Below, piece after piece: positions 26,390 to 54,489 of a stretch of DNA of 64,000 nt. Under the pieces are notes generated by a model. That model had not been told where the DNA came from and made no database searches. It saw only the letters and a program-made list of their open reading frames with translations. Both the position numbers and the translations under genes were made by a program. Location: sequence record NC_042013.1; one strand, 5' to 3'. Numbering within the stretch: position 1 is the first letter of the stretch; each line of letters starts with the position of its first letter.

Positions 26390-27382
26390 ATGTCAAGCGA
26401 TTTACGCAAATACAAAAATATTCTTTCTGAATCTTACAACCCGCCTGTAGTTAATGAAGACTTGGGTACTCTTAAATTCGTTGATAAAGACCTTATTGGC
26501 GCATTGAAAAATAAACCGTTTTATAGCCGTCGCAGCACTGGTCTTAAGTCCGGTCTTACATCAGATTCACCTGTCAAAACAACATTGGTTGGAACGGCAT
26601 CAGCTATACATTCTCTCTTAACCGACAAAACCGTATTTGGAGCGGTGTTCATGGTTGAGGACCGTCAGCTATTTGTTGCGGTAAAAGAAGATAACGACAA
26701 ATACAACATTACATTCTCAAGAACAAACAAGTCATACGCAAAAGATGCTGGTATTGATGAATATGATTATAGTGGAAAAGTTAGTTCAGCTAAGCTTAAG
26801 AAATTGGTTTCTGCTATTAACAAAATGGCAAAAGAAGACAATAAAATGCTTGAAGCACAGGTTATCTTCATTGATGGCTCTAAGACCGAACTTCGTAAAG
26901 AACGTCAGGCAGCACGTAGTGGCTCTCCATTCTTCACTAAGAATTTGACAAGAGAATTGCGTCAGAGTCTTTCAGCACGCCTTGAAAAATTCAAAGCTAG
27001 TAAGTCAACTAACGTTGATGATTTGGATGCAGCGTTTGAAACCATTAAAGAAAAATTCCTCGACATGATCAATGTTGGTGGTTATTCTTACAAACTATCA
27101 CGTACAAACCTTAATTGGGAATCACTCAATAAGGGCGAAGATGACACTAATGTATGGAGCGACTCATATCTTACGTACTCTTTGACCAGTGACTCTGAAG
27201 GTAAACGTAGTGATGAAATGCGCAAGGTTTATACCGATGCACGTGAAATTAGCGACGACTCTGAAAAGGATGCATATATCGACGCAGAACGCGCTAAACT
27301 TCCACCACGTTCATTTGATATTATCCTTCGACTTAAGGGTAATGTTCTTACACCGGTTCGTTTAAAGTCATCTGAATATTGA
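26390..27382 (+). CDS. Hypothetical, probable virion internal protein
   Basis: N-terminal ILSE/VVNE sites; late-type promoter; own terminator. Confidence 0.75.
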   Translation: MSSDLRKYKNILSESYNPPVVNEDLGTLKFVDKDLIGALKNKPFYSRRSTGLKSGLTSDSPVKTTLVGTASAIHSLLTDKTVFGAVFMVEDRQLFVAVKEDNDKYNITFSRTNKSYAKDAGIDEYDYSGKVSSAKLKKLVSAINKMAKEDNKMLEAQVIFIDGSKTELRKERQAARSGSPFFTKNLTRELRQSLSARLEKFKASKSTNVDDLDAAFETIKEKFLDMINVGGYSYKLSRTNLNWESLNKGEDDTNVWSDSYLTYSLTSDSEGKRSDEMRKVYTDAREISDDSEKDAYIDAERAKLPPRSFDIILRLKGNVLTPVRLKSSEY

Positions 27383-27389
27383 TAATAAT

Positions 27390-27416
27390 AAAGCCATCCT
27401 TCGGGATGGCTTTTTT
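27390..27416 (+). terminator. Rho-independent terminator (probably bidirectional)
   Basis: AAAGCCATCC-TTCG-GGATGGCTTTTTT. Confidence 0.9.
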
Positions 27417-27418
27417 CT

Positions 27419-28126
27419 TTAGTGCTTTAGTTTAAAAAGTCGTTCTATACTTTCTTTATTTCCACCGGATTTTCCATTTGCACTTAAAGATGACTTAACT
27501 GTCTTCTCCCAAATAATCTCAAAATCATCAGGGGCTGAATATTCAGAAATAAAAACATCATGTGTTTTTGAAATATCCCGTACCCAATTCCAAAACTTGT
27601 CAGAGTCGAATTGGTCCTTATATCCTGTTGTATTAGAATATGGTGGATCACAATAAATCACAGCTTCATCTGGTATGTACATTTCATCGTATGAACCGCA
27701 AGAGAAAACAACATTTTTTAATTTGTTAACTTGCTTCATAATGTTGGTAAATGCTTCTTTTTGATAATCGCGTAAACCATTTTTTGTTTTTGTTTCTCCT
27801 GCATATCCACCAAACCATTTTCCTGAATATGAACAATTAAATCCGACATACCCAACAATGTGGTCCGGTTGCTCAAAGCGTTTACACGATTGATAAAAAT
27901 CGCGATCATAATAATCAGGAACCCAACCATCTTGTAACGCTTTCCACATCGCGATAAGATATTTGTTAGAATCATTTGCATAGCACGGACGAACATCCGG
28001 TACTTCGGCAATCATATTCATACCACCACCGAACGGTTCAACATATGGTCGACCATCAAACAAGGTGATTGTTTTTTCAAATATTTCGCTCGCGAAACGT
28101 GCCTTTGAACCCATATATTTCATCAA
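27419..28126 (-). CDS. DNA adenine methyltransferase, Dam/D12 class
   Basis: KYMGSK, YVEPFGGG (SAM binding), IYCDPPY catalytic motif. Confidence 0.88.
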   Translation of the reverse strand: MMKYMGSKARFASEIFEKTITLFDGRPYVEPFGGGMNMIAEVPDVRPCYANDSNKYLIAMWKALQDGWVPDYYDRDFYQSCKRFEQPDHIVGYVGFNCSYSGKWFGGYAGETKTKNGLRDYQKEAFTNIMKQVNKLKNVVFSCGSYDEMYIPDEAVIYCDPPYSNTTGYKDQFDSDKFWNWVRDISKTHDVFISEYSAPDDFEIIWEKTVKSSLSANGKSGGNKESIERLFKLKH

Positions 28127-28803
28127 TGTTCCTTATAATATTGCTCAAGACGACGCAACCATTCGTCCTTTGCATTTTGTAGTTCCACGCCTTCCCAAAT
28201 AAACTCTTGATACGCAAGATCGCGTGAAACCATAAAGATAACACCTTTTTTCATTTTCGTACCATATATTTCATCGTGGGCCATCATATAAGCAGCCGTT
28301 TGCAGGGAATAATCCTCGATATGTTCTCTCTTTTTTGGCTTTTTTGTTGTTTTATAATCCATTATCGCATCGTCACATTCATATTGACCAACCAAGTCAG
28401 TTGTTCCGGCATATAGGCCGGGGTAATATAAGACGCGTTCCATACCGTATACTACTGATATTTTAGGAAATGCGTTTTTTACAATGACATTTGCCATGTT
28501 ATTAGCCATCTTATGGATGACGTTTTTTTTAGGATTAATATCCTCTTTAAGCATTGTTTTTTCGAGATTATCGTGCATTAATGAACCGAGGTTGGTTGCC
28601 TCTTTTGTTATTCTTGCGGCTTCCTCAAGACCTACTCGCTTTTTCCATTCCTCGAGTTCAGGTTTATAAGAGGTAGCGCTTAATATAGTTGTAACAGATG
28701 GGAGATTGTTACCATCAGGGTCAACATAATGTCGGACTCCTGATTCAAGAGTAACTCGTTCTAAATCGGTATACTCAAACTTTTCTATAATTTCCGGTAT
28801 CAT
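28123..28803 (-). CDS. PD-(D/E)XK exonuclease (MGME1/exonuclease VIII-like)
   Basis: LPSVTTIL, G..MH, YAGTTDL, IMDYKT, Q..AY. Confidence 0.82.
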   Translation of the reverse strand: MIPEIIEKFEYTDLERVTLESGVRHYVDPDGNNLPSVTTILSATSYKPELEEWKKRVGLEEAARITKEATNLGSLMHDNLEKTMLKEDINPKKNVIHKMANNMANVIVKNAFPKISVVYGMERVLYYPGLYAGTTDLVGQYECDDAIMDYKTTKKPKKREHIEDYSLQTAAYMMAHDEIYGTKMKKGVIFMVSRDLAYQEFIWEGVELQNAKDEWLRRLEQYYKEH

Positions 28804-28867
28804 GTAAAAATCCTTATGTAAGATTTGATCTTAACATAAGGATTTCTGAGTTTTCAATATTTAGTAG

Positions 28868-29080: not shown

Positions 29081-29096
29081 TTTGTATCTCCTATAA

Positions 29097-29333: not shown

Positions 29334-29344
29334 TAATTACGCCT

Positions 29345-31190: not shown

Positions 31191-32111
31191 TTAGTCTCCT
31201 GAACACGCTACTCTAAACGAATTTTCTAAAAATCCTTGCATTGTACCTTGAATAGTATCGGTGTTTTCAAGAATATCAGAAAACGTTTCAAATGACATGT
31301 TATCAACGTGGGTTTCACGTACAATATTAGCAAAAACTTCGTATGAACAGCATGTTTTTGCTTTTATAAAGTTGCAAATAAATTGATCATCACCATCAAA
31401 ATATTTGTCTGCGGTGAATTTCAAAATATCAATTGGATGTTCATTTGGGTATTTAATAAAGGTGTTCGTCATTTTCCAAACGATGTTGCTCAAATCTAAC
31501 GTTGTACGTGGTTCAGAAACCGCCACAGGAGGCTGTACAATAGCAAGAACAATAGATTCGGTCAATACGTTATCAACGATCTCAAGCCCTTCCTTGACGA
31601 TCTTAGCCGTAGCAATAGGGCTTTTAATTCCACGTGGCATAAGTTTTTTATCAACGAAGTCGTCATACATTTTTTGACTTGCTAACATTGTTTTACTGTT
31701 AGAAGACATGTATGCGATAATTTTGAAAGATTCGATGTCATACTCGGTGCATCCACCAAACATTTCTTTTGGTTTCCAACAATTTTCTTTGAAAACTTTT
31801 ATTGCTTCAGACTTTTTAGGAAAACCAAGCATGACTTTATCTTCATCATACTTTTTTCCATCAGACGTTAATTGGTGAATTACGTATACTTTAGAACCCT
31901 CAACTGGTTTAGGACGAACCCATACGTCAAGATTTTCACCATCCGGTGAATTGGTTCCTAAAATATATCCATATGTTGCCGTGACTTTACGACGCCATTT
32001 TTCCCCAAGATGATTAGTACCAGAGCGGTATGTTCCAGCCTTATCTTCTATAGAAATATCCAGACCATCGAATTTTAATTTGCCAACGACCTTACCCTCG
32101 AATACGATCAT
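31191..32111 (-). CDS. Inorganic-pyrophosphatase-like (InPase-type) domain protein
   Basis: YGYI.GT..PDGENLDVWV and DEDKVMLGF match the family I PPase YG..P.T...DGD.LD / D.K.I layout. Confidence 0.7.
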   Translation of the reverse strand: MIVFEGKVVGKLKFDGLDISIEDKAGTYRSGTNHLGEKWRRKVTATYGYILGTNSPDGENLDVWVRPKPVEGSKVYVIHQLTSDGKKYDEDKVMLGFPKKSEAIKVFKENCWKPKEMFGGCTEYDIESFKIIAYMSSNSKTMLASQKMYDDFVDKKLMPRGIKSPIATAKIVKEGLEIVDNVLTESIVLAIVQPPVAVSEPRTTLDLSNIVWKMTNTFIKYPNEHPIDILKFTADKYFDGDDQFICNFIKAKTCCSYEVFANIVRETHVDNMSFETFSDILENTDTIQGTMQGFLENSFRVACSGD

Positions 32112-32494
32112 TTAGAAAGGTTCCTTTTTACCGTATTCATTGCAGACTTTTTAATTTTTTCTTTTTCAACTTCTTTTTGATCTTTGTTGACGTAACGATC
32201 AGATTTTACGCTGTTTAGAAAGTAGATATACATTTCACCGCCATCCTCAGGGTTTCTTTCAACCTTTAGGATTGGCTTAATACGAGACGCTACCGATAAA
32301 ATCAAATCATTATCAATGATAGTACCCTGATATTCAGGTTCATTGTTTAAAAATTCTATAACTGATGCTACCGGAACTTTGTCTTTACCGGCTGAAATCA
32401 ATGGTGTTATATAATTTACAATGTCTTTTTGAGCTTGACGTTTAATGTCAAGCTCTTCAAACAAAGATGATTCAAGTAAATCGATAAGTCTCAT
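32108..32494 (-). CDS. Hypothetical, probable head-associated protein
   Basis: ATG 32494 with AAGGA RBS; N-terminus MRLIDLLES. Confidence 0.75.
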   Translation of the reverse strand: MRLIDLLESSLFEELDIKRQAQKDIVNYITPLISAGKDKVPVASVIEFLNNEPEYQGTIIDNDLILSVASRIKPILKVERNPEDGGEMYIYFLNSVKSDRYVNKDQKEVEKEKIKKSAMNTVKRNLSK

Positions 32495-35613: not shown

Positions 35614-35841
35614 TCACATTCTCCAAAAATCTTGCGGTTCGTTATATTTAAAACACACATTACCATCTTGGTCTGTGAATTTCAAAATTATTCGACGGCT
35701 GTATAATTTTCGAGCGAGTTCGTATTCTCGTTCATCGAGTTCATCAACGGGGAAAAGATCACGTTCAATGATCTTTTCCACTAGATTAGTTTCTTCAGTA
35801 GAAATGTACGTTGGGATACCGACGATATCTATAAATTTCAT
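35614..35841 (-). CDS. Hypothetical protein
   Basis: ATGA overlap with the upstream gene. Confidence 0.7.
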   Translation of the reverse strand: MKFIDIVGIPTYISTEETNLVEKIIERDLFPVDELDEREYELARKLYSRRIILKFTDQDGNVCFKYNEPQDFWRM

Positions 35842-36206
35842 CTCTTGCTCTCGGTTACATAACGAACGCCTTGTTCGCGGATAACACCTGTGAGGCGCTC
35901 AAGCTCGCTAACCAATTCTTTAAATTCGCCAAGCGGAACTTCTGGGAGTTGAGCAATGATTTCGTCAATATGTGTGCGCACTGACTCAAGTGCAGAACTA
36001 CCAATAACTGCAACGGGTGCAATTGCGTCTACGGCCTGAACAGCATCATAATCAATCGCATCAAAATCAGGAACTTCATATTCTGAAAAATCTGAATTTT
36101 CCCAATCGTCAAGTTCTACATCGTAATCAACTGTTTCGATTTCTTCTTCAGGAGTAGGTTCAATGAAAAAGTCATCTTCATTAAGTTTCAAATCTTTATA
36201 ACGCAT
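35838..36206 (-). CDS. Acidic hypothetical protein
   Basis: N-terminus MRYKDLKLNE; AAGGA RBS. Confidence 0.72.
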   Translation of the reverse strand: MRYKDLKLNEDDFFIEPTPEEEIETVDYDVELDDWENSDFSEYEVPDFDAIDYDAVQAVDAIAPVAVIGSSALESVRTHIDEIIAQLPEVPLGEFKELVSELERLTGVIREQGVRYVTESKR

Positions 36207-39487: not shown

Positions 39488-41820
39488 GAATTTTTCTTAC
39501 GTTTCTTTGCGAACTCGTAAATACCCCAATCGCCATCTGGATCAAAGCCTACACCAAGACCGCCTACATTTCCATTTGTTGTAGCAACGTTACCTGCTCC
39601 GGTTGATCCAGCGGAGGACGTTTCAGTAATAGGCACTTTTTTTAGTCTAAAGAAAACAGAACGTGGTAGATTATTCTCTTGTAATTCGTATCCTAAATCT
39701 TTAAATTCAGCCGCAAGTTTTTTACCCATTGCTGAATATAGTTTTGCAAGTCCATTAGATTTATCGCCTACAAAAAACAACATGTCAGGCTTGTTATCAA
39801 CGATGTATTTTTTAATGCGATTTTTAACAATTCCTAATACTTTGGGAGCATCTTTTAATAATGTATTGGATGGTTTAAATGACGAACCTTGTTTGTCATC
39901 ATCTGGATTAACGAACCCATAATCAACTTCTACATATCGTGGTGATGGCGTGAAACGAAGGAAATAATCAATTCCATTAAACGTGAAATTACCCTCGTCG
40001 TGTTGTATAGTACCACCACCGGGGTCTTTGCGTTTCCCTTGTTTAAGATCAATATCTACTGACGTATCAAATAATTCGTTTAGATTATTAGTAAAATGAT
40101 AAAAACGTTCCCCGTGCTTATCAACAATATCAAGCTTCAAATTTAGTTTTGCCGCAAGTCTTTTTGAAAGAGCATCATATAACTTAACACGTGAATAATC
40201 GTCTAAATTCGCCGCAAATTTATATGGAGGAGTGAATTTTGATTTAATGATATTGTATACAGCAGAAAATACCTTGACTGAATTATTCCACAGGTTCTTT
40301 TTATCAAAATTTTTATTGGAATCATCTCCAGCCAAACTGAATAAGATTTCATCCCCTGCAATCAGACGAATATTGTACGTAATACCATCAACAGTGAAAT
40401 CATATCCGCGTGTAGCGATAGTTGTTTCAACTTCTGTATCAAATAATTCGGTCAAATTCTTTTGACTATTAATCCATTTTGACGCCGCAGGTGATTTGCT
40501 TGGCGAATTAATAAACGAATCTATACGTTTCGCTACTCCATTCAAATCTAATTTCGTATTGCTACTATCAACAATGAATAGATTGTTTCCAAAATAGTTC
40601 TGAAAACGGCCAAGGTTGGCCTGTGTTTGCTTCCATATCGTTTCAACAACATCAGGTGCAACTGTTCTTGAACGCTTGCTATTGCGTTCTATGGCCGTTT
40701 CCATATCGGTGTTGACGAATAACAAACCGGTATCATATCCTAACTTTTTAAGGTCGTTTGATAAGGTAATGATTTTATCATAATTACGACCGGTTCCGTC
40801 AATGACAAGAGGGAGTCTTCCATCAAGGTATAAATCCAATTGAGATTTATTAAGACTATGAGCTTTTGATTTAACGTTCCTATCCCAAGAATCCATGTTT
40901 TTAAGATCAAGGTCATTCTTTGAGGCAAGAAATTCTATAAATCGATCAACGTTTACCTCTTTGAAACCCTTGTGCGCCAAAAGTTTTTTAGAAATGGTTG
41001 TTTTACCAGAACCGGGACCACCGGCAGTAAAAATAGCCTTAAAAATGTGCTTGTCATTTACACCCTCGGTAACCTCGGATGTATTGGAAAACATTGGAAC
41101 GATTTCTTTCAAATACGTGTCCGATTTAATAAACAACACGTTCCCGCTCATCCACACTTCACGATTATCAGGTATACTTGCGACGTCATTAGTTATCGTG
41201 AAACCGTTTTTAGAAGGCTCCATAAAATCTGCATATGCTTTCCATAGATTATCGCCGCGTCTGAATCCAATATAGTCGATGTCATATGGAATTTTGATAT
41301 TTTGGTGCGTTACTAATGATTTGCTTATTTTATCCAAATCGTCTTTAAGTGCACTGCTGTTAGACGAGCTAAGCGGTATACCTGTCTCTCGTGATAGATC
41401 ATAAAGAGCGCTATTAATGTCAGCAGGGCTTGGATCACCAAAGGATTCCCAAAAATCAATTTCAGAACATACACCAATTGACTGATGTTCTAAAGGAATT
41501 ACTACATATAAAGAGCCATATCCAATAGACCTATTCAATGAGGTTGAACATATAAAGGACTTAGAACGTTTAGGATAATTACTCCACGCCGGATCGGCAT
41601 CAACAATTAATGTATAATAATTTTCGGTGTTGGCAGAACGACGACTAATCTCATTACCCGTTCCAAGTACGTATGCTCCGGTATCTTTCATACCACGATA
41701 TATAGGATTATCTCCACGAGTCTCCACATATGATTTGATAACGTCATGGTATTTCTTTAAAACACCATTACCATCAACAACGTCATAACCTGTTGCTTCG
41801 TTAAGATCATTCCATTTCAT
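39484..41820 (-). CDS. Array gene 1: ART-like (type A) + P-loop kinase + two Alt-N-like modules (polyprotein-like)
   Basis: MKWNDLNE; PIYRG, FICSTS, NREVW; AGGPGSGKT and LVIDGTG; linkers VTEG, LTELFDT, LNELFDT, ITET. Confidence 0.75.
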   Translation of the reverse strand: MKWNDLNEATGYDVVDGNGVLKKYHDVIKSYVETRGDNPIYRGMKDTGAYVLGTGNEISRRSANTENYYTLIVDADPAWSNYPKRSKSFICSTSLNRSIGYGSLYVVIPLEHQSIGVCSEIDFWESFGDPSPADINSALYDLSRETGIPLSSSNSSALKDDLDKISKSLVTHQNIKIPYDIDYIGFRRGDNLWKAYADFMEPSKNGFTITNDVASIPDNREVWMSGNVLFIKSDTYLKEIVPMFSNTSEVTEGVNDKHIFKAIFTAGGPGSGKTTISKKLLAHKGFKEVNVDRFIEFLASKNDLDLKNMDSWDRNVKSKAHSLNKSQLDLYLDGRLPLVIDGTGRNYDKIITLSNDLKKLGYDTGLLFVNTDMETAIERNSKRSRTVAPDVVETIWKQTQANLGRFQNYFGNNLFIVDSSNTKLDLNGVAKRIDSFINSPSKSPAASKWINSQKNLTELFDTEVETTIATRGYDFTVDGITYNIRLIAGDEILFSLAGDDSNKNFDKKNLWNNSVKVFSAVYNIIKSKFTPPYKFAANLDDYSRVKLYDALSKRLAAKLNLKLDIVDKHGERFYHFTNNLNELFDTSVDIDLKQGKRKDPGGGTIQHDEGNFTFNGIDYFLRFTPSPRYVEVDYGFVNPDDDKQGSSFKPSNTLLKDAPKVLGIVKNRIKKYIVDNKPDMLFFVGDKSNGLAKLYSAMGKKLAAEFKDLGYELQENNLPRSVFFRLKKVPITETSSAGSTGAGNVATTNGNVGGLGVGFDPDGDWGIYEFAKKRKKNS

Positions 41821-41840: not shown

Positions 41841-41847
41841 TATTTAT
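41841..41847 (-). promoter_or_regulatory. Putative late promoter (ATAAATA) for array gene 1
   Basis: Overlaps the stop of array gene 2, about 20 nt before ATG 41820. Confidence 0.45.
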
Positions 41848-43316
41848 TTGATAAGATCATTAAGATATTTCTGATCAAACACAAGTAGTTTACCGGAAAC
41901 CCATACTTCCTTATCAACCGGGATATTGGTTTTTTTAGTCAATTCAAACCCGTTACGTTCAGGGTTAATGTAGTTGACGTACCAGTCGAAAATGTTCTGG
42001 TCGGAGGGAATACTAAGTTCTGAATATAATTCGTTTACTGCCGGGTTATCGCGGTAGCTAGACAACGTAATAAAATCATCTTTCATTTTTTCAAAATCAG
42101 TTTCACTGATTTTTATACCTACGTCATTTGCGGCAGCGAATATCATATTGTTAATCATGTCGATTGGGTTGCCATTAATTTCAGCAAACGATGCCCATAT
42201 ATCACCTTCAGGGCATACACCAAAATCTTGATTTTCAAGTGGAACAACTACATATGTTTCACCAGCCGATTCAGCATAATATTCAACAACATCCAACGAT
42301 GATCCGCATATCAATGATTGTGAGCGTTTAGGATATGCTGACCATTCTGGAAGATTATCGATCATTAATGTATAATAATTCCGACCATTACGGCTTTTTC
42401 TTTTTATATCACCGGTATTAAAAATGGTGTAACCGTTCTCTTGCGGTTTCATACCACGATATATAACTGGACCATTTTCTACAATCTTCTTAATTTTTTC
42501 TTTGTTTTTAGTCAAAAAATCTGGAACATTGTCTAACGGTTGTGGTGATGTATTATTCCATTCGGAGCGAATCTTTAAAAATACAGCAGCATCAAGTGCA
42601 ACATACTTTCCACCTGAAATCATTATTTCGTTTTTAGAACGAATAGCTTCCTCGAGATTAGTTGTTTTGTATAGTTCATTGATCTTCTTTGCAAGATGTT
42701 CTTTATCAAACGCCAACCTACTTAGAACAGACGTAATTTTGTTTTCAGGTATCTTGTTTAGCCAACCCAATATTGATGATGCAGTTGAAATCAATTTTTT
42801 ATTAATTTCTTTTAGCGAGAATTTCTCTGGTAGTTCTTGTAATTTGTTATTATTAAACCATGAAAGGTCGTCATGGGTAAGAACTTTTTTGTTGTCGTTT
42901 TTAAACTTTATGAATCCATTCGAGTATAAGTATGTTTTAAAGTTATAAAGATCACGAATAGATGGTGAATACGAGAATGAAAAATCGCCAATGGGAAAAA
43001 TAACATATACTGACCCATAACGAGTTGCGTCTCCAAGATCACCGGTACAAAAAATACTATTATCTCGATTCGACTCTATGCCAGCGGCTTTAAACCCCTC
43101 AATGAAAACATTATGGTAGAACGGAGATGAATCTACCGATTGTCTATCAGTACGGATATTCTTTATCAAATACTCAGAATCTTCGCGCATACCTCTATAT
43201 AGAGGTAGTTTTAGAAAATTTGGATTTTCAGACAAATACTTTTTGCAATGTGTATTGATATATTCTATGATGTTTGAAACATCTAAGTCGTTTTCATTAA
43301 GCTGTTCCCAACGCAT
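41844..43316 (-). CDS. Array gene 2: tandem ART-like domains (type B + type A)
   Basis: ATG 43316 MRWEQLNE; PLYRG/IFCTG/NEIMI then VIYRG/LICGSS/KEVW. Confidence 0.72.
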   Translation of the reverse strand: MRWEQLNENDLDVSNIIEYINTHCKKYLSENPNFLKLPLYRGMREDSEYLIKNIRTDRQSVDSSPFYHNVFIEGFKAAGIESNRDNSIFCTGDLGDATRYGSVYVIFPIGDFSFSYSPSIRDLYNFKTYLYSNGFIKFKNDNKKVLTHDDLSWFNNNKLQELPEKFSLKEINKKLISTASSILGWLNKIPENKITSVLSRLAFDKEHLAKKINELYKTTNLEEAIRSKNEIMISGGKYVALDAAVFLKIRSEWNNTSPQPLDNVPDFLTKNKEKIKKIVENGPVIYRGMKPQENGYTIFNTGDIKRKSRNGRNYYTLMIDNLPEWSAYPKRSQSLICGSSLDVVEYYAESAGETYVVVPLENQDFGVCPEGDIWASFAEINGNPIDMINNMIFAAANDVGIKISETDFEKMKDDFITLSSYRDNPAVNELYSELSIPSDQNIFDWYVNYINPERNGFELTKKTNIPVDKEVWVSGKLLVFDQKYLNDLIK

Positions 43317-43317
43317 A

Positions 43318-44088
43318 TCAAATTCCCTCAATATCAAGTAATGCAGTGTCTTTTAAAAATAGTACGTTACCAGAAACCCATACCTCATTATCATTAAAAT
43401 CAGAAGGCACTTCGCTATTAAGTAAGAAATTATTAGTGGTTGGATCAAGTAATTTGGAAATCCATTCGAACGTTTTGCCGGGATAATCCATCATTGAAGT
43501 TCCGAGCCAACGATATTCCTCTGAGAAATATTCTTTGTAAGTATCGTCGCCTTTTTTCTGTTTATCAATAAACGAAAATGTTTGCTTTAATGCGGTTGGT
43601 GAAAGTGTCCAAGGTGAATCGTACTTATCCCCTATACCTTTCATTAATGTATATGCGTCGGCTAACATATGAGCAAATGAATTGATTGATTGCCCACCAG
43701 ATTCGATTGTGAAATTAAAAGATACCCAAAAGTCCGACGCTTGACAAATACCATACTGTTGACCCTCTAATGGTATAACGTGATATATTTCGCCATATTT
43801 TCTTGCTTTGGCAACTGATGTAGTGCATATAAATGATAACAAACGATCAGGATATGCGTCCCAAGACGGTAACATTTGATCGATAATAGTATTAGGGTAT
43901 GAAAATGTATTAGCGGATTCGCGTCGTTTTTTTGGATTACCGACAATCAATGGTCCAGTATCTCTCATACCACGATAAACAAAGCGCCCTTTATTAACGT
44001 AGGATCGAATTATATCGTGATATTCGGTTGGGATATTTTCAAAATTACTATACCAATCTGATTTTTCAGTAAGTTGTTCCCAACGCAT
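43318..44088 (-). CDS. Array gene 3: ART-like, type A
   Basis: MRWEQLTE; VYRG, FICTTS, NEVW. Confidence 0.72.
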   Translation of the reverse strand: MRWEQLTEKSDWYSNFENIPTEYHDIIRSYVNKGRFVYRGMRDTGPLIVGNPKKRRESANTFSYPNTIIDQMLPSWDAYPDRLLSFICTTSVAKARKYGEIYHVIPLEGQQYGICQASDFWVSFNFTIESGGQSINSFAHMLADAYTLMKGIGDKYDSPWTLSPTALKQTFSFIDKQKKGDDTYKEYFSEEYRWLGTSMMDYPGKTFEWISKLLDPTTNNFLLNSEVPSDFNDNEVWVSGNVLFLKDTALLDIEGI

Positions 44089-44089
44089 A

Positions 44090-44884
44090 TCAAGTATCCT
44101 TTTTAGAATATTTATTATTCATAAGGTCTTGAAATTTATCATTATGAATGAATAATACTCTATCAGATAACCATACTTCGTTTTTTCCAAAATGGGCGGT
44201 ATCTATATTAGTTGTAACTTCGAAACCATTTATGTCTGGATCAAAAAGATACGTTAGACCTTTCCAAACGCCATGTTTTTTGAAATATGCAAACATATCG
44301 TTTACTTGCTTAATATCATACCAATGATCACGGTTTAACGCATCAAATTCTTCTTGTGATGTGTTTTTCACATACGTTTCAAGCATATCCATAACTGATG
44401 AAACGGTTTTTGGATTTTCAGGAAGGTATTGGTCTATTGTATTTCTTAGTAATTCTTGTAAAACTTGATTGAACATGTTTAAAGAACGTAAACCAATTTC
44501 GTTGATGCTTTTGAAACCAAACCAAAAATCCTCGGCAGGGCAAATACCTATTGGCTGTAAATCCAATGGGATAACAACATATAATCGTCCATAACCAAAT
44601 GCTACCGTTGAATCTGTTGTGCATATAAATGATTTAGATCGCTTAGGATATGGTTTCCATTGTGGTAAAAAGTTATCTATAAGCGTGGTATAGAAATTAT
44701 ACGTGTTTTTTGATTTGCGTTCTCCTGTAGAACCATTACCGATTATATATGGGGACGTTCCTTTCATTCCACGATAGATGTAATTACCTGATGCGATATA
44801 ATCATCAATGATCGTTTTGTATTTTTCAGGGATTTCGTCTATATTCGTATATGAGAGTGACTCGGTAAGTTGTTCCCAACGCAT
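44090..44884 (-). CDS. Array gene 4: ART-like, type A
   Basis: MRWEQLTE; IYRG, FICTTD, NEVW. Confidence 0.72.
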   Translation of the reverse strand: MRWEQLTESLSYTNIDEIPEKYKTIIDDYIASGNYIYRGMKGTSPYIIGNGSTGERKSKNTYNFYTTLIDNFLPQWKPYPKRSKSFICTTDSTVAFGYGRLYVVIPLDLQPIGICPAEDFWFGFKSINEIGLRSLNMFNQVLQELLRNTIDQYLPENPKTVSSVMDMLETYVKNTSQEEFDALNRDHWYDIKQVNDMFAYFKKHGVWKGLTYLFDPDINGFEVTTNIDTAHFGKNEVWLSDRVLFIHNDKFQDLMNNKYSKKDT

Positions 44885-45663
44885 TATTTGGTTTCCTTAT
44901 GGTAACGTTTTAACTCGGTGTATCTTTCAAACGGTATAGCCAAATATTTATCACCGGTTATCATAATTTCATTACCGGATACAATCGCTTTTACTAAGTC
45001 GGTTGTTTGGTATTCTTTTACTATTTCACTAAAATTAGTGTCTATTCTTATAAGATTTAATTTTGAAAAATAATAACTTATTGATTTTGGAACATTATCT
45101 GGATACAACTTTATCAAATCATTAGTAGAAATATGACCAGAAAGTTTTTCTAATCCTCTATTTTCAGCACGGGCATCTATTGATATTCGAATCGATTCTG
45201 GAAATTCATCAACATTCAATGTTTTGTTATCGGATGGCACAAATTTAGATGCATCAGTTTGGTTATATAATGCAACAGTTAAGTCCCTTATTTCAGGACT
45301 CCACGTATATTCAAAATTTCCCATAGGATAAACAACGTGAACCTCGCCATATTCCTCCGCGTTGTAAGACTCGCCTATGCAAAACATAGAATTAGATCGT
45401 ATAGCCTTGAAACCTTGAGAAATAAATTCTTCGTCCAGTTCTTTTTGGACTTGTTTCGCCGTATCTTTAGGTAAACGATCTTTTCTAATTGTATTAATTG
45501 ATGCAATTGTACTTGGTGTTTTCATTCCTCGGTATAAACGATTTGTCTCAAAATATGGATTTTCATGAATATATGGTCGACAATGTTCATTAACAAATTT
45601 CAATAGATCGCTATATGTTCGAATAGGCGCTGTAGTGCTTTCTGTCAACTGTTCCCATTTCAT
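44884..45663 (-). CDS. Array gene 5: ART-like, type B
   Basis: ATG 45663 MKWEQLTE; LYRG, MFCIG, NEIMI. Confidence 0.72.
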   Translation of the reverse strand: MKWEQLTESTTAPIRTYSDLLKFVNEHCRPYIHENPYFETNRLYRGMKTPSTIASINTIRKDRLPKDTAKQVQKELDEEFISQGFKAIRSNSMFCIGESYNAEEYGEVHVVYPMGNFEYTWSPEIRDLTVALYNQTDASKFVPSDNKTLNVDEFPESIRISIDARAENRGLEKLSGHISTNDLIKLYPDNVPKSISYYFSKLNLIRIDTNFSEIVKEYQTTDLVKAIVSGNEIMITGDKYLAIPFERYTELKRYHKETK

Positions 45664-46418
45664 AACGCAGTATCCTCGTAATATGCTTTTATTTTTCTCC
45701 ATTCTATCATTTGAATGAATAGAACTTTTCCAGATAACCAAACTTCTCTGTCATCTGGAATGGATGATATATCTGTTGTGATTTTGAAATTATTTTTACG
45801 TGGGTCGATTAGCTTCACATAAAAATCATAAAGACTATCACCAATATTGTAACCCATTTCCTCGAAGTCTTTTACCGCCACCACGTGCGGATCAAGTGGA
45901 ATAGATTTCGATATATCGTTAAGATCATTATGAAATTCGTTATAATTTGTTTGTGAAATTGGTCTTTTTAAATAAAATCTTGCTAAGTCAGATATCATAC
46001 GGTTTATTGCGGACGGGAGATTTACAAATGATTCCCAAAAATCCATTGCGGGGCATACACCAATTTCTTGATTTTCTAATGGAATAACAACATAAGGAAC
46101 ACCGAACGCGGATGCGTAAGAATATTCCGTTGAACATATAAAAGATTTAGAGCGCTTAGGATATTCCTCCCAAGACGGATCATTGTCCATAATCAACGTA
46201 TAGTAATTTTCGGTGTTTTTAGATTGGCGATTCATTTTATTCCCATCACCAAATCCAAAAGGCCCAATAGATTTCATTCCACGATAAATCGTTTGTTTGC
46301 CTTTGGCAATAGGTTCTATGACGGGGCCATACTTTTCAAGTAAGGTTTCAATATCGAAATCACCGACCTCATATGCTTTAGAGGTATCACCTTTTTCGGT
46401 TAACTGTTGCCACTTCAT
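45660..46418 (-). CDS. Array gene 6: ART-like, type A
   Basis: MKWQQLTE; IYRG, FICSTE, REVW. Confidence 0.72.
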   Translation of the reverse strand: MKWQQLTEKGDTSKAYEVGDFDIETLLEKYGPVIEPIAKGKQTIYRGMKSIGPFGFGDGNKMNRQSKNTENYYTLIMDNDPSWEEYPKRSKSFICSTEYSYASAFGVPYVVIPLENQEIGVCPAMDFWESFVNLPSAINRMISDLARFYLKRPISQTNYNEFHNDLNDISKSIPLDPHVVAVKDFEEMGYNIGDSLYDFYVKLIDPRKNNFKITTDISSIPDDREVWLSGKVLFIQMIEWRKIKAYYEDTAL

Positions 46419-47218
46419 AAACTATCCCAATCTATTTCTTCAATCGATTCATACCTAATAAACATAACTTTTCCTGAAATCCATACCTCAGAATCATGGT
46501 CGTCTGGATGCTTGCTTAAAGAGAACTTATTTTTAACAGGGTCGAAAATCTGCGCTAATCCTTTTTGAACGTCGCCAGCTTCTTTGAAATATTTATATAA
46601 CGCAAATTCATCTTGAAACGTTTGTAGGTCGTCTGACGTTGATGGAAAAGAGTCGTAATCATAATTCGTTTTCTTAATGGCTTGCGACAGTATTGCCATT
46701 GAATTAAAAAATGAATCTGCGCTCGCCGCCATTATTTCTTTCTTTTTAAGAATATAATAAAGTCGACCTAAAATTTGGTTGAAATAGTGTAGGCTACCGT
46801 TGGAAATGATTTGTTCAAGAGTTTCATCAAATGCATACCAGAAGTCGTCAGACGGGGCGACACCGAAGTCTTGATTTTCTAATGGAATTACTACATACAC
46901 TGTGCCATACGAGCCAGCCGTTGATTCGTGTGTAGTGCATATAAAGCTTTCTGACCTAAGGGGAAATTTTTCCCATTGTCTTCTAAGAATACGGTCAACT
47001 ATATATGTATAATAATTAGTAGTATTTTTTGATTTGCGTGACATCTTCGTGCCATCACCAAAAATGATAGTTCCTGTATCTTTCATACCTCTATAAACGT
47101 ATGATTCGGACATCGTTATATACTCTTTTACAATCCTACGATATTTTTCAGGTATTTCATTAACGATAGAATATCCCTTTTCGGTATCGCCAGCTTCGTT
47201 TAATTGGTGCCATCTCAT
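46415..47218 (-). CDS. Array gene 7: ART-like, type A
   Basis: MRWHQLNE; VYRG, FICTTH, SEVW. Confidence 0.72.
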   Translation of the reverse strand: MRWHQLNEAGDTEKGYSIVNEIPEKYRRIVKEYITMSESYVYRGMKDTGTIIFGDGTKMSRKSKNTTNYYTYIVDRILRRQWEKFPLRSESFICTTHESTAGSYGTVYVVIPLENQDFGVAPSDDFWYAFDETLEQIISNGSLHYFNQILGRLYYILKKKEIMAASADSFFNSMAILSQAIKKTNYDYDSFPSTSDDLQTFQDEFALYKYFKEAGDVQKGLAQIFDPVKNKFSLSKHPDDHDSEVWISGKVMFIRYESIEEIDWDSL

Positions 47219-47976
47219 TTGAATTTTTCTTTCATCTGTTCGAATATATCAGGTTCTATTGCTAAGTATGAAGTCCCGGCTATCATAATTTCGGAACCAC
47301 TTTCAATAGCATCTTCGAGATCATTATTTGAATAATAATTTTTAAAATTATCTATTAATACATTTTGGTCTATTTCCAATTTCTGAAAAACTTCATCAAT
47401 ATCATCTGCACGAAACCATAAACGAAGATTATTGCCTGTTTCTTTAAAAATAACGTCTTTCATATAATTAAATGAAAACTTTTTTGGAACTTTGTAGTCC
47501 CCAAGCTCAGACGGTGACAAGTCAAGATCATCAATTGTTAGAACGTCCTTATCGGCATTTTTAAATGCAATACCACCATTGAGGTATATCGTTGGTAACA
47601 CATTAAGCAAATCACTATATGATGATGACCAAGTATATTCAAAATTTCCTATAGGAAAAATTACCATAGTGTATCCGTATTGGTCCGCTACGCTTTTACG
47701 TCCGGTAACAAACATACTGTTTGATCTACGAGCGACGAACCCTGCTTTTTTTAGAGTGTCATCATATAGATCATGAAAGTACCTTTTCATATCTGTTGGT
47801 TCACGATCTGTTCTAATATTTTTGATAATTATGTCTTCACTATCAGATATCCCTCTATATAATGGACTATTCATCCAATCGGGGTTTTCTCGTAAATATT
47901 CAGAACAATTTTTCTTAATAAAAGAAACAAGATTTCTTTTAGTAACATTAGCCTCTGTTAATTGATCCCAACGCAT
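47215..47976 (-). CDS. Array gene 8: ART-like, type B
   Basis: MRWDQLTE; LYRG, MFVTG, SEIMI. Confidence 0.72.
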   Translation of the reverse strand: MRWDQLTEANVTKRNLVSFIKKNCSEYLRENPDWMNSPLYRGISDSEDIIIKNIRTDREPTDMKRYFHDLYDDTLKKAGFVARRSNSMFVTGRKSVADQYGYTMVIFPIGNFEYTWSSSYSDLLNVLPTIYLNGGIAFKNADKDVLTIDDLDLSPSELGDYKVPKKFSFNYMKDVIFKETGNNLRLWFRADDIDEVFQKLEIDQNVLIDNFKNYYSNNDLEDAIESGSEIMIAGTSYLAIEPDIFEQMKEKFK

Positions 47977-48752
47977 TAGATCGCCTTTCCATATTTTACA
48001 AATTCTCTAAACAAACGAAGTGATATTGCTAGATATTCTTTACCGGTTATCATTATTTCGTTTTTAGATTCCATTGCTGCATTGAAGTCAGTATCTTGAT
48101 ATGATTTGGCAAGGTCTAACATTTGTTCAGAGCCTTGTAACATATTTTGTTTATGAAAAAATGTTCTTAAATCTTCATTCCAAGCACGATCACCTATAAT
48201 CTTAATTAGTTCGTTTGATGACATGACATCTGGCATTTCTATTCCTTGTTTTTTGAATTCGGAATTAATATAACCTGCTAATGATGAACTCATCTCTCTA
48301 ACGTAAATATTTTTTTCATCGGAAGGAACAATATAAAGCATATCCTTGATGTCGACGGTCAAATCATCAAATTTAGGATTCCACGTAAAATCAAAATGAC
48401 CGATAGGAAAAATAACGAATTCTTTTCCAAATTCAACTGCTGATCCTTGTGAACTTGTACAAAAAATAGAATTTCCGCGTAATGCCTTAAATCCATTTGC
48501 AGAAAGGTAATCATCTATTTGAGTTTGAATTAAATTGGAAGAATCACGTGGTTTTCTATCTTGGCGAATTTGACGTATCTGTATGTCTTTCAATCCAGCA
48601 ATCTTTATTCCACGGTAAAGAGGTCTCTTTACCCAATTAGGATTTTGTTGAACATATTCTTTACAATGAGTGTTGACGTATTCGGTTAATTGTTCTAAGG
48701 TTGTTATATCTTGAACATCCGTAACGGCTTCTGTAAGTTGATGCCATTTCAT
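47976..48752 (-). CDS. Array gene 9: ART-like, type B
   Basis: MKWHQLTE; LYRG, IFCTS, NEIMI. Confidence 0.72.
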   Translation of the reverse strand: MKWHQLTEAVTDVQDITTLEQLTEYVNTHCKEYVQQNPNWVKRPLYRGIKIAGLKDIQIRQIRQDRKPRDSSNLIQTQIDDYLSANGFKALRGNSIFCTSSQGSAVEFGKEFVIFPIGHFDFTWNPKFDDLTVDIKDMLYIVPSDEKNIYVREMSSSLAGYINSEFKKQGIEMPDVMSSNELIKIIGDRAWNEDLRTFFHKQNMLQGSEQMLDLAKSYQDTDFNAAMESKNEIMITGKEYLAISLRLFREFVKYGKAI

Positions 48753-49507
48753 GATAAATCCTCCAACATATCCATATATACGTGATGCTTCAATGCCAAA
48801 TATTTATCGCCTGTAATCATAATTTCGGTGTTGTTCCATATTGCATCGTCAATTTTATCGGTTCTATATAATTCTTTAAAACCGTCAGCGAGATGGTCAA
48901 TATCGATTTCAAGCTTATCCACTAAGCTTTCTTCATTAGAATCTATTAGATCATAAATTTTATACCAATCGATCTTAAAATTTTCATTCAGTTCTTTAAA
49001 AGAAATTTCGGTAATATCGGGAGGAAGATTATCATTTGTTAACTTTTTCGCCTCTACCCTTGTAAGAATAGTATTAACGTTTTTAAAACGAAAAAGGCCA
49101 CGACGAGCAAGGCGTCCGAATGCTGTGTATAAATCTCTATATTCCGTAGTATAAGAATATTTAAAATCGCCTATTGGAAAAACAACATATACATCACCGT
49201 ATCCAATTGCTGCATTTTTATTACCAGTGCAAAAAATACTATTAGAACGGATAGCCGTAAGACCAGCACGTTTCATAGCTTCATCATATACTTTATGTAT
49301 ATATTGATTAGAACTTAACGGTTTTCTGTCTTGGCGAATAGTTTGTATTGAAACTTCACCGCGTGAAGACATTCCTCTATAAAGAGGATAGCTCATAAAA
49401 TCAGGATGTTCTTTGATATATGGCTGGCAATTTTGTTGAATGAATGCCATGATATCATCTGAATCTTTTAATAGAATCTCGTTTTCAATTAGCTGGTGCC
49501 ATCTCAT
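48749..49507 (-). CDS. Array gene 10: ART-like, type B
   Basis: MRWHQLIE; LYRG, IFCTG, TEIMI. Confidence 0.72.
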   Translation of the reverse strand: MRWHQLIENEILLKDSDDIMAFIQQNCQPYIKEHPDFMSYPLYRGMSSRGEVSIQTIRQDRKPLSSNQYIHKVYDEAMKRAGLTAIRSNSIFCTGNKNAAIGYGDVYVVFPIGDFKYSYTTEYRDLYTAFGRLARRGLFRFKNVNTILTRVEAKKLTNDNLPPDITEISFKELNENFKIDWYKIYDLIDSNEESLVDKLEIDIDHLADGFKELYRTDKIDDAIWNNTEIMITGDKYLALKHHVYMDMLEDLS

Positions 49508-50592
49508 CGTTTGATTTCCTTTGCTATATTTTGAAAACGTGTATAATTGCTATATTTAATAGCGATATATTCTTTTCCGCTAATCATAATTTCGCATCCC
49601 GATTTGATAGCAGATACTAAATCGGTTGTTTTATATGTATCTAACGTTTTATCTAATTCTGGATTGTATTTTACTTTATGCTTACGTACCATTTCGACAA
49701 ATATTTCTTCTGGTACATCTTCAGAACTACCATACGCCTTTAAAATGTCGTTTGTTGATACTCGATAATTTTCGTGTTTTACGTCCCTTTTAAGTCTAAG
49801 ACTGAGTTGTTTATAATAATCACTACCAATTACTATTATTCTTTCATCATCTTTTATGACAGTAGATGCCCCTGCAATATTGGTTGTCATATCCAAAATC
49901 TTTGGGTTCCAAGTAAAATCAAATTCACCAATTGGAAATATTACATAGGTATTTCCATATGTATATGGTACATCCGAATCACCTGAACAGAATATAGAAT
50001 TGTCACGATTAGCCTTTATACCGCGATTGCTTAGCTCTTTAACGATTTTGTTATGGGTTTCTAAATCAGTATCTAATGGCTTTCGGTCGGTTCGTATAGC
50101 CGAAACAATGATAGGTTCGGACGAGGAAATACCTCTATACAACGGATTGTTGTTGAAATCTGGATTCATACGCAGATATGGTTGACATTTTTTTCTAATA
50201 AATTCTGCAACATTATTATCATTTAATTCAGCTGTTTCTGTAATAGACCCTTTAGGTAAACGATACATGCCATAAGAGATTGAGAAATCTTTGTCTTTGC
50301 CCTTATTGACAACGAACCCAAAACGTTTATAGAAATCAATTAACCTTGAAACAGAGGTTGTTCCTTGAATTTTTTCAGGAGTTAACAATACGATTTTGTT
50401 ATTTTGATCTGCATAAGCACAGATATATTTCATAAGAATAGAGCCGGTCCCCTCGCCGGGGGTTATGGCTTTAAGCATATGGATAATTATTTTGTCGTTA
50501 CGTTCCGTTACAGAAATAGACAAGCCAAGGTCGCGAGCTTTTGCTTCAATATATGTTTCCTCGGCTGTTTCTAACAATTGAAATAATCTCAT
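49504..50592 (-). CDS. Array gene 11: GNAT acetyltransferase + ART-like type B
   Basis: MRLFQLLE; GEGTGSILMKYI and LIDFYKRFGF (GNAT); ITET linker; LYRG, IFCSG, CEIMI. Confidence 0.75.
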   Translation of the reverse strand: MRLFQLLETAEETYIEAKARDLGLSISVTERNDKIIIHMLKAITPGEGTGSILMKYICAYADQNNKIVLLTPEKIQGTTSVSRLIDFYKRFGFVVNKGKDKDFSISYGMYRLPKGSITETAELNDNNVAEFIRKKCQPYLRMNPDFNNNPLYRGISSSEPIIVSAIRTDRKPLDTDLETHNKIVKELSNRGIKANRDNSIFCSGDSDVPYTYGNTYVIFPIGEFDFTWNPKILDMTTNIAGASTVIKDDERIIVIGSDYYKQLSLRLKRDVKHENYRVSTNDILKAYGSSEDVPEEIFVEMVRKHKVKYNPELDKTLDTYKTTDLVSAIKSGCEIMISGKEYIAIKYSNYTRFQNIAKEIKR

Positions 50593-53185: not shown

Positions 53186-53192
53186 ATGGTAT

Positions 53193-53221
53193 GTTATACA
53201 CTATACGAAACACGGTTTCAA
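53193..53221 (-). promoter_or_regulatory. sigma70-like promoter upstream of the ligase-like gene
   Basis: TTGAAA-N17-TATAAC. Confidence 0.55.
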
Positions 53222-53223
53222 AT

Positions 53224-53943
53224 TTATTTTTTGTCCATTGATTTGAACATCGCAAACCCAAGCTTCGCAAGTTGCTTCGTTAATTCTTTAGCGTCTGGAC
53301 GTTTTTCAATATCAGCAAACGATTTTTCATTAGCTGCAATATCAACCAAATCCTCGAAATATTCACCTGACAAACCAGATTGCTTCAATATGTTTTGATA
53401 GGATTTTTGATCAAAACTCACAACCGAGTCGTCACGTTTTGTATCCTTGCCGGTAAATGATTTTCCCTGTGCCGCTTTGACCAATCTATCAAGTTCGTCG
53501 CTTACGTCCACGCCTGTTGCTCCAGAACGCTTGCCTTTACTAGATTTCGACACTACGTCGCCTGATGACGGTTTATCTTTGTATTGACCAACTAAATCAT
53601 TTTCAAGTGCAAATGCCGCACCATTTTCAAAAATCTTGTCGAGTGCGTCCTGCTGAACAATTGTCATATCTTGACGATCAAATGGAATATTTGCATCAGC
53701 CAAAAAGTGTTTAACGTTTGTTGCAGAAAAATTAACTTTCTTAATAAGAAAATCAATTAATGCCCCCGTATTTGGCATGCGGTTTGCTTTTGCTAAAAAT
53801 GTTTTAAAATCGTCGCCTAGTGCTTTTTTTACAGTAAGAAGTTGTTTCTTTCCCTTACCGGTAGCACTCCCTAGAGATGATGCAATGGTTGCATCCCAAC
53901 GTTTGACTTTATCTTTAAAACCCTCTTCGTCAAGCTGTCTCAT
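53224..53943 (-). CDS. Hypothetical, probable internal head protein
   Basis: N-terminus MRQLDEE; 239 aa; K/D-rich. Confidence 0.72.
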   Translation of the reverse strand: MRQLDEEGFKDKVKRWDATIASSLGSATGKGKKQLLTVKKALGDDFKTFLAKANRMPNTGALIDFLIKKVNFSATNVKHFLADANIPFDRQDMTIVQQDALDKIFENGAAFALENDLVGQYKDKPSSGDVVSKSSKGKRSGATGVDVSDELDRLVKAAQGKSFTGKDTKRDDSVVSFDQKSYQNILKQSGLSGEYFEDLVDIAANEKSFADIEKRPDAKELTKQLAKLGFAMFKSMDKK

Positions 53944-54191
53944 TTCGATTTCTTCCTATTCTTAATAAGTTCATTCATTTTTCGAGTGAACTTAGCATTA
54001 TCGCGATTTTTTACGGAAAGAAGAAGACGATTGCACAATTCTTTAGCTGTTTCTTCGTCTAGTTGTTCCTCTATCAAATCCATTACATAATTACAATTAG
54101 CAATCGCATTCTCAGCGCGTTGAAGAATGTAATTATAATCGTGTGGTTGAGCGATTTTCATCAACTCGTCAAACAATCTCTTATTCTGCAT
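53940..54191 (-). CDS. Hypothetical protein
   Basis: Coupled overlaps with both neighbours. Confidence 0.7.
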   Translation of the reverse strand: MQNKRLFDELMKIAQPHDYNYILQRAENAIANCNYVMDLIEEQLDEETAKELCNRLLLSVKNRDNAKFTRKMNELIKNRKKSK

Positions 54192-54489
54192 TCGACAACT
54201 CCGTTAGTCGTTTAGTATATTCAGCGATTAATTGACTAACACGTTCGTGAGTCCACATTGATGCGGCCTCAAAGCCATCAATATAAGAGCCATTCATATC
54301 ATCAGCCATTCTATTATTTAAAAGCTTGAATGAAAGATCGTCTAAATCGCTTAAAAGACCTTTCAATTCAATTTTGTAATCATTTTCAATAGTTTCGTAT
54401 ACAACGGTTTCTTCAACTTCCGGCGCATTACCTTCTGTTATATAGGATAAGGCGCGAATATATTCACGCAAATCTCCGGTATATGACAT
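54181..54489 (-). CDS. Hypothetical protein
   Basis: GGAG RBS; ATAAATA at 54519-54525. Confidence 0.72.
   Translation of the reverse strand: MSYTGDLREYIRALSYITEGNAPEVEETVVYETIENDYKIELKGLLSDLDDLSFKLLNNRMADDMNGSYIDGFEAASMWTHERVSQLIAEYTKRLTELSNAE

Follow-up and report, generated by a model that had tools for sequence, protein, structure and literature searches.

In phage T4 the internal proteins IPI, IPII and IPIII are unrelated, fast-evolving products of late genes that share a short N-terminal leader ending in L/I-x-E. The T4 protease gp21 cleaves after this tripeptide, and the capsid-targeting sequences of the internal proteins are 10-19 residues long (PMC9026906). For loading, the first 10 residues of IPIII are enough; targeting depends on residues 4 and 7, and processing on residues 8 and 10 (PMC9026906). 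Here we describe a leader of this kind in a window of 64,000 nucleotides, bases 1-64000 of Agrobacterium phage Atu_ph07 (MF403008.1, 490,380 bp; window and genome coordinates are identical), a T4-related jumbo myovirus of ~490 kb. The leader is eight residues long, has the consensus M-R/K-W-x-Q-L-x-E, and stands at the start of a tandem array of paralogous proteins and also of proteins unrelated to the array. It is likely to be the Atu_ph07 version of the T4 capsid-targeting sequence, a propeptide processed by a gp21-type protease. This had been proposed in an initial annotation of the window, and the proposal is supported by the presence of all 17 annotated bearers in the published virion list and of the T4 machinery in the genome.

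The likeness to the T4 internal proteins extends to a homologous protease, scaffold and capsid protein, and to the leaders themselves: T4 MKTYQEFIAE may be set beside MRWEQLTE, and some relatives have MKTFKELFE. We read the T4 N-termini as MKTYQEFIAE (ipII and ipIII), MELITE (alt), MAKINELLRE (gp24), MLKEQLIAE (gp22) and MNEPQLLIE (gp21), with ..SFLTE-65 in gp23. There are also differences. The Atu_ph07 leader has eight residues rather than 10-19 and a distinct consensus, in which residue 3 is Trp; it is carried by at least 17 and probably ~30 proteins, against three or four in T4; and its junction recurs between domains. In T4, cleavage and sufficiency for loading were proven, whereas the Atu_ph07 leader is read from sequence and from a published proteome. 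Its scale, its phage-specific dialects and its polyprotein-like junctions are notable extensions of the known T4 kind.

Other phages provide partial parallels. T4 Alt is a host-modifying enzyme with a very short I-T-E propeptide, and it is packaged and injected (PMC5694885). It loses six residues by a cut at ITE-6 (PMC5694885) and is cut again at LTE-619. The array proteins differ from Alt in that they have no sequence similarity to it, in that an ADP-ribosyltransferase (ART) fold is only weakly suggested for them, and in that there are 12 paralogous domains rather than one gene. In the jumbo phages phiKZ, 201phi2-1 and SPN3US, a gp21-related protease cuts many head-internal proteins after Glu, and paralogues have N-termini in common (PMC5694885, PMC9026906). 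There the cleavage motif is S/A-x-E and propeptides generally exceed 100 residues, whereas Atu_ph07 has a short leader of the T4 type, L/I-x-E. The N-terminal signal of DarB from phage P1 suffices to load a reporter into the capsid (PMC9024508), but it is 10-30 residues long, has no consensus among Dar proteins and comes with no evidence of L-x-E cleavage. Polyvalent proteins are giant fusions for which entry into the host along with the phage DNA has been predicted (Iyer et al. 2017, PMC5512222). Some of their domains recur here, clearly for the InPase domain and the Zeta-like kinase and weakly for GNAT, ART-PolyVal and LPD3, with the same predicted delivery to subvert the host. Unlike polyvalent proteins, most are encoded by solo genes of 130-360 amino acids that have individual leaders, or by small fusions divided by protease junctions, and two to four modules are combined only in gp53, gp54 and gp63. 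Within the literature open to our search, we found no paper mentioning these proteins or the leader.

The leader in the genome and in the virion list

The motif scan was run in all six frames on the whole genome, rebuilt from the annotated record. The strict pattern M-[RK]-x-x-[QD]-L-x-E has 18 matches and every one of them is the first Met of an open reading frame (ORF); 17 are annotated proteins and one is an unannotated ORF. The core [RK]xx[QD]LxE occurs 46 times, 18 of them directly after an ORF-starting Met. Its 14 occurrences inside ~800 proteins give an expectation of 0.08 N-terminal matches, against the 18 observed. Neither Leu6 nor Glu8 varies among the 11 array proteins or among the 18 strict matches. 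A bare [LI]xE was rejected as the code, being too unspecific. All leaders quoted in the initial annotation are present at their gene starts, between gp33 and gp69. The gp numbers are those of the published paper and equal the annotated order of coding sequences (CDS), which we verified on ClpX (gp2), primase/helicase (gp70), terminase (gp109), portal (gp198), protease (gp204), capsid (gp215), ClpB (gp492) and ClpP (gp676).

Beyond the window the strict bearers are gp381 (MKWQDLSE), gp408 (MKWHQLTE), gp482 (MRWNDLLE), and gp561 and gp672 (both MRLIDLLE), scattered at 290-461 kb. With the first 12 residues removed, BLAST divides the strict bearers into at least six families that have no detectable similarity beyond the leader. 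These are family A, which comprises the array and gp408; family B, with gp482 alongside gp483 and the C-terminal repeats of gp53; and the singletons gp43, gp381, gp561 and gp672. Five bearers (gp43, gp381, gp482, gp561 and gp672) are unrelated to the array. Even under a very permissive search, the mutual similarity of gp43, gp561 and gp672, which have the identical leader MRLIDLLE, is confined to residues 1-19. Of the non-homologous genes named in the initial annotation, gp43 is a strict match; the looser examples gp67 (MRQLDEE) and gp69 are weak. We rejected mere inheritance of the leader within one paralogous family in view of the unrelated bearers, of a GNAT insertion in gp63 and of a switch of dialect on contig L019, the last two described below. 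A position-weight scan found further near-matches, among them gp196 (MRWQDISSKKLTE), gp394 (MQYTDLIE), gp487 (MRYIELCE), gp548 (MRLSEILE) and gp407 (MKLINLLE, from an internal ATG).

The virion proteome is that of Supplementary Table S5 of PMC6102473, which gives 140 virion-associated proteins out of 714 encoded. We placed these proteins on the genome by comparing published molecular weights with ORFs, and settled ambiguities with the annotation tables. In the comparison of scan and proteome that the initial annotation had proposed, all 17 annotated strict bearers are in the mass spectrometry (MS) list. Five of these, gp381, gp408, gp482, gp561 and gp672, had been chosen by motif alone, before that part of the table was read. 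Sequence coverage is 23-52% for 15 of the 17, often in many gel slices. That six independent families should all fall in a list holding 20% of the proteome has p ~6e-5. The near-matches gp196, gp394, gp407, gp487 and gp548 are all listed as well; two others, gp592 and gp597, are not. The locus, gp33-gp69, lies within the 'CDS 31-76' block, where the authors of the Atu_ph07 paper remarked on 29 virion proteins of unknown role (PMC6102473). The related phage RsoM2USA was unusable for a second proteome test, as its paper identified ten gel bands only.

The leader-bearing genes are associated with signals for late expression. ATAAATA, the core of the T4 late promoter, has 125 copies in the genome and lies within 60 nucleotides upstream of 40/140 virion genes vs 13/667 other ORFs (odds ratio 20, p 3e-22). 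It is found upstream of most leader-bearing transcription units, preceding gp53, gp55, gp33, gp381, gp561, gp196, gp394, gp487, gp548 and gp594, and gp672 has GTAAATA. Atu_ph07 encodes a gp55-like late sigma factor. A search for infection RNA-seq that would give expression timing found the sequence in metagenomic DNA runs only. The annotated start of gp407 (303755-304783; L007:39955-40983) is probably wrong: its ATG is inside the late-promoter-like sequence ATGCAAATAAATAATG, and an in-frame ATG 11 codons downstream (303788) gives MKLINLLE. We also observed that the minus strand at 262-330 kb holds very long tandem arrays of small paralogous genes (60-130 amino acids), in which gp381 and gp407/408 are embedded on the opposite strand as single leader-bearing genes driven by late promoters; metagenomic contig L017 is alike.

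Related phages have leaders of their own. On the metagenomic contig L019 the orthologues of gp381, gp394 and gp672 and a fourth protein all start with M-[RK]-x-x-E-L-[FY]-E (MRLCELFE, MRMSELYE, MRIKELFE and MKYSELFE), and the leader is their sole mutual similarity. Since positions outside the cleavage site change in concert, it would seem that one partner, different from phage to phage, recognises the leader on all these proteins, which supports targeting and not cleavage alone. Leaders of other huge phages, annotated and unannotated, include MKIHNLTE (SCTP-2), MTTFKEYLTE (RsoM2USA) and MRLKKILKE (LR756508). The orthologues of gp381 have leaders of variable length and sequence, all of which end in hydrophobic-x-E directly before the conserved GIKVYHGS.

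Head machinery and internal junctions

The T4 machinery on which the capsid-targeting proposal leans is present in Atu_ph07. The protein gp204 is a homologue of gp21, 32% identical to the T4 protease, and A-P-L-M-E-58 of the capsid protein gp215 aligns on S-F-L-T-E-65 of T4 gp23, a known T4 cleavage site. Proteins of the head module start with MSTKLTE (gp204), MDFRQIRALLE (gp205), MSIRKFLNIINE (gp206), ..LLINE (gp213) and METGFEKLLE (gp214). The gp22-like scaffold gp214 contains 25 [LI]xE sites, and its absence from the virion list would be expected of a degraded protein. The head module of RsoM2USA has the same pattern. A second class of leader is common to gp206 (MSIRKFLNIINE/SY; here and below a slash marks the junction), gp594 (MSDLRKFINILNE/SY) and gp33 of the window, which is in the virion list with 65% coverage.

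Some annotations in this part of the genome look spurious. The 'topoisomerase IV subunit A' gp200 (162443-163612) and gp213 of the head module are paralogues (E 5e-28), and the 'Rad50 ATPase' gp214 (171475-172719) is the gp22-like scaffold. Beside the portal gene, gp199 (161865-162098) is a 77-residue virion protein that starts with MKLTELFNPLTE. Its leader is of a double L-x-E type (MKLNEVFSPLxE), as on many metagenomic homologues of family A.

The junction at the end of the leader is repeated inside some proteins. In gp63 the junctions are LLE8/TAE and ITE119/TAE. In gp53, NLTE458/LFDT and NLNE582/LFDT bound the family-B modules, and gp483 starts with MLLSE5/LFDT and has an internal NLTE147/LFDT. 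The gel bands of gp63 and gp483, and approximately that of gp53, are the sole experimental sign of processing, and we take them as an indirect hint. Predicted at 41.4 kDa, gp63 peaks in band 8, where other proteins are of 25-31 kDa, and a cut at residue 119 leaves 28 kDa. For gp483 (33.7 kDa) the predicted pieces are 16.3 and 16.9 kDa, and it peaks in band 12, among proteins of 13-16.5 kDa. The fit is approximate for gp53 (87 kDa), which is most abundant in band 9 (~18-22 kDa) and has predicted pieces of at most 26 kDa. The array proteins of ~30 kDa run at about the expected size, consistent with a loss of eight residues.

The array family and the layout of the locus

The proteins gp53-gp63 form one family, A, with two subfamilies and 12 paralogous domains in the window. 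Conservation is concentrated at the N-terminus: pairwise identity is 0.70 in the leader vs 0.27 in the body, and the leader is the most conserved seven-residue window, above the invariant Y-R-G and R-S-x-S motifs. Its codons vary synonymously (CGT/AGA/AAA; CTT/TTA/TTG/CTA; ACT/ACC/ACA), which indicates selection on the peptide and not recent gene conversion. A family-A structure model has a predicted local distance difference test score (pLDDT) of 92, with an average of 57 for the first ten residues and values above 86 for most later ten-residue blocks. The protein gp63 is not unrelated to the array: it is a family-A domain with a GNAT-like domain of 110 residues inserted behind the leader, and the leader has stayed N-terminal. 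From its conservation, its codons, the model confidence and the gp63 insertion, the leader is a separate module.

Family A is very large, virus-only and has no assigned function. A word-indexed homologue search returned 5 relatives only and an exhaustive profile search was needed; this gave 9,109 cluster representatives (50% identity clusters) at E <=1e-3. The closest ESM Atlas fold clusters are 100% viral. Among 133 stand-alone metagenomic homologues, 85% start with M-[RK] vs 17% of other Atu_ph07 ORFs, and 96% have hydrophobic-x-E within 14 residues vs 28%. Their leaders form classes of 5, 8, 9 and 10 residues, e.g. MRLNE, MRYQELLE, MRLKQYINE and MKFKQFLLTE. One metagenomic protein of 2645 residues (P0007) has nine stretches matching the family-A profile, in the manner of a polyvalent fusion.

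What might these proteins do? A search of 80 members matched no Pfam family, a search of PDB sequences gave no match, and Foldseek found no significant match for two family-A models among PDB and Swiss-Prot models. PHROGs has only 'unknown function' families for them. The family-A profile shows no similarity to T4 Alt and hhalign finds none to the ART-PolyVal-like gp381, so the idea of the array as Alt-like ARTs was rejected. The best VIA-align matches are Arr (Z 5.6) and BC2332 (Z 5.4), all below the tool's guide of Z 8; at lower scores Tpt1, AvrPphF, TreX, PARP16 and CteC are mixed with cNMP-binding domains. There are candidate residues for the Arg, Ser-x-Ser and Glu of an ART catalytic triad: the paralogue alignments show little or no variation in Y-R-G, R-S-x-S and a late Glu, and across 80 homologues G39, R82 and E236 are invariant, with the Arg of Y-R-G and S85 nearly invariant. 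An ART fold is only weakly suggested for family A.

The features of the window are collected in Table 1. Downstream of its array-family domain, gp53 has a Zeta-toxin-like P-loop kinase domain followed by two family-B repeat modules, and 31 of its peptides were found by virion MS. The two-domain protein gp54 runs in band 4, near full size, and the eight paralogues gp55-gp62 are all in the list, in band 7 or 8 at about the expected size. The variant-leader protein gp67 is abundant in virions (67% coverage) and has a weak match to LPD3, a polyvalent-protein domain, and gp69 is represented by a single peptide. The leaderless gp42 has an InPase domain (inorganic-pyrophosphatase-like) of the polyvalent-protein type (PF18823, E 2.8e-34), and in the gel it is found in band 11, mainly at about half of its predicted 34.6 kDa. 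Up to 64% of the 31-mers sampled from 43000-49000 are found in metagenomes from biofilm, honey, freshwater, food fermentation and marine sediment, so close relatives of the phage appear to be widespread.

Table 1. Leader-bearing genes, neighbouring genes and late-promoter sites in the window (a slash marks the junction)
Feature	Position	Strand	Remarks
ORF of 139 amino acids	22449-22868	+	in a gap between annotated genes; no GenBank annotation
Late-promoter core	26345-26351	+	upstream of gp33
gp33	26390..27382	+	second leader class MSSDLRKYKNILSE/SY, 26390-26431 (..NILSE-14)
gp42 (annotated 'mega protein')	31191..32111	-	no N-terminal leader; virion protein, same cargo cluster
gp43	32108..32494	-	128 amino acids; leader MRLIDLLE, 32471-32494; in virion MS list
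gp47	35838..36206	-	longer variant MRYKDLKLNE, 36177-36206; weak consensus match; in virion MS list
gp53	39484..41820	-	leader MKWNDLNE, codons 41797-41820; array-family domain, residues ~9-239
ATAAATA	41841..41847	-	21-27 nucleotides upstream of gp53 start
gp54	41844..43316	-	leader MRWEQLNE; two tandem array-family domains, the second internal and leaderless
gp55-gp62	43318..49507	-	eight tandem family-A paralogues, ~255 amino acids, each M-[RK]-W-x-Q-L-[TNI]-E
gp55 start	44088	-	leader MRWEQLTE
ATAAATA	44109..44115	-	upstream of gp55
gp56 start	44884	-	leader MRWEQLTE
gp57 start	45663	-	leader MKWEQLTE
gp58 start	46418	-	leader MKWQQLTE
gp59 start	47218	-	leader MRWHQLNE
gp60 start	47976	-	leader MRWDQLTE
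gp61 start	48752	-	leader MKWHQLTE
gp62 start	49507	-	leader MRWHQLIE
gp63	49504..50592	-	leader MRLFQLLE/TAE, 50569-50592; GNAT-like insert; junction ITE119/TAE, 50236-50244; family-A domain
gp67	53224..53943	-	short variant MRQLDE/E, 53926-53943; leader assignment weak
gp69	54181..54489	-	loose L-R-E-9 and I-T-E-19 (..SYITE-19), 54433-54489; weakest case
ATAAATA	54519..54525	-	upstream of gp69, head of gp69-gp67 block
Further ATAAATA sites	36302, 57918	+	
Further ATAAATA sites	26324, 38743	-	

Proposed capsid targeting, its rivals and its meaning

If the leader is a capsid-targeting sequence, we can outline how it may work. Proteins that start with M-[RK]-[W/L]-x-[Q/D]-L-x-E would be made late, together with the head proteins, and the leader would dock them on the scaffolding core of the assembling prohead. 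From homology and fragment sizes, gp204 is expected to cut after the Glu of L-x-E; by analogy with T4, the mature protein would then be freed inside the capsid and delivered with the DNA. The same junction inside gp63, gp53 and gp483 would release domain-sized pieces, as in a polyprotein. In the leader, cleavage would be determined by positions 6 and 8, and positions 2, 3 and 5 would form a phage-specific address, given that in a related phage they vary jointly across unrelated proteins. The cargo itself may be a host-modifying arsenal of family A, a Zeta-like kinase (gp53, Zeta_toxin E 1.5e-14), GNAT, InPase, and ART-PolyVal and LPD3, the last two through weak sub-threshold matches; ART-PolyVal in gp381 (3.8e-4), LPD3 in gp67 (3.8e-3) and GNAT in gp63 (5e-3) are all below curated cut-offs.

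Several observations weigh against capsid targeting. The virions were precipitated with polyethylene glycol and pelleted, with no density gradient and with heads and tails together, and ribonucleotide reductase, terminase, RecA-like and single-stranded DNA-binding proteins are in the MS list too; 'virion-associated' is therefore not proof of encapsidation. The supplement reports coverage per protein rather than peptides, and our non-virion background is an approximate one of greedy ORF calls. [LI]xE within 15 residues is only two-fold enriched, in 30% of virion proteins vs 16% of others. The abundant virion proteins gp42, gp44, gp50, gp65 and gp68 of the same cluster have no leader, so the leader is not the sole route into the particle, and gp54 contains internal [LI]xE sites yet runs near full size, which means that context must matter for cleavage. 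Finally, the unannotated strict match (315248-315526, minus strand; 92 amino acids, MRLFDLFE; 56% identical to an orthologue on contig L017) belongs to a tandem family of ~90-100-residue proteins at 312.7-317 kb that start M-[DE]-[LF]-x-[DE]-[LF]. The annotated relatives that we checked, e.g. gp423, are all missing from the virion list, and this small-protein family is probably not cargo.

Could the virion association be an artefact, with abundant late proteins co-pelleting and the leader serving some cytoplasmic role? The purification and the enzymes in the list would allow it. We nevertheless give this very little credence, given that every annotated strict bearer is listed, nearly all with substantial coverage and often in many slices, that several bearers occur mainly at sizes matching L-x-E cuts, which implies exposure to the prohead protease, and that the head scaffold and protease carry the same kind of leader. 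A subtler alternative accepts processing and denies targeting: the leader would be a protease site only, a propeptide keeping enzymes inactive or tethered until maturation, and other parts of the proteins would direct them to the head. The only features common to all dialects and phages are a hydrophobic P3 and Glu at P1, the same junction recurs inside proteins, at places that need no targeting, and in T4 processing and targeting map to different residues of the capsid-targeting sequence (PMC9026906). Yet within one phage unrelated proteins agree at positions 2, 3 and 5, and in another phage these positions have changed jointly, which is superfluous for a pure cleavage site, and it is hard to see unrelated folds that share their first eight residues each finding a separate route into the prohead. 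We regard this alternative as unlikely. The shared N-terminus might also lack any function in the particle and be a mobile 5' cassette, made up of the late promoter, the ribosome-binding site and the first codons, that recombination has spread and that is maintained because it makes late translation efficient. Many bearers do have a similar upstream layout of AATAAATATT, 7-9 nucleotides, AGGGAT and ATG, and a basic residue 2 with an A-rich second codon is common in well-translated genes. Such a cassette is highly improbable in our view: the free synonymous variation in the leader points to selection on the peptide, promoterless genes inside operons carry the leader too, the end of the motif coincides exactly with the border of the region conserved among orthologues, and the internal junctions and fragment sizes would be left unexplained.

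A broader proposal may be built on the capsid-targeting reading, one that we hold tentatively and consider somewhat less than evenly probable. T4-related jumbo phages may use a phage-specific address dialect, read by the scaffold and erased by the protease, to load dozens of host-modifying domains, either separate or polyprotein-linked, and family A (>9,000 clusters) may be among the largest uncharacterised families of virus-only effectors. If such dialects exist, the cargo of an uncultured phage would be readable from the first ten residues of the proteins that its genome encodes, and an 8-residue tag would suffice for loading chosen proteins into capsids of this kind.

If the leader is what we take it to be, ~30 'hypothetical' virion proteins of Atu_ph07 could be placed in one defined class, cargo of the head that is delivered along with the DNA. 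The rule 'first 8 residues plus a late promoter' would find such cargo and could be applied to uncultured huge phages, and the leader is a candidate short tag for loading reporters into Agrobacterium phages. The finding also links T4 capsid targeting, which is known by experiment from one phage group, with polyvalent injected proteins, which are known from comparative genomics only; phages appear to deliver the same set of domains in two ways, as fusions or with a tag on each.

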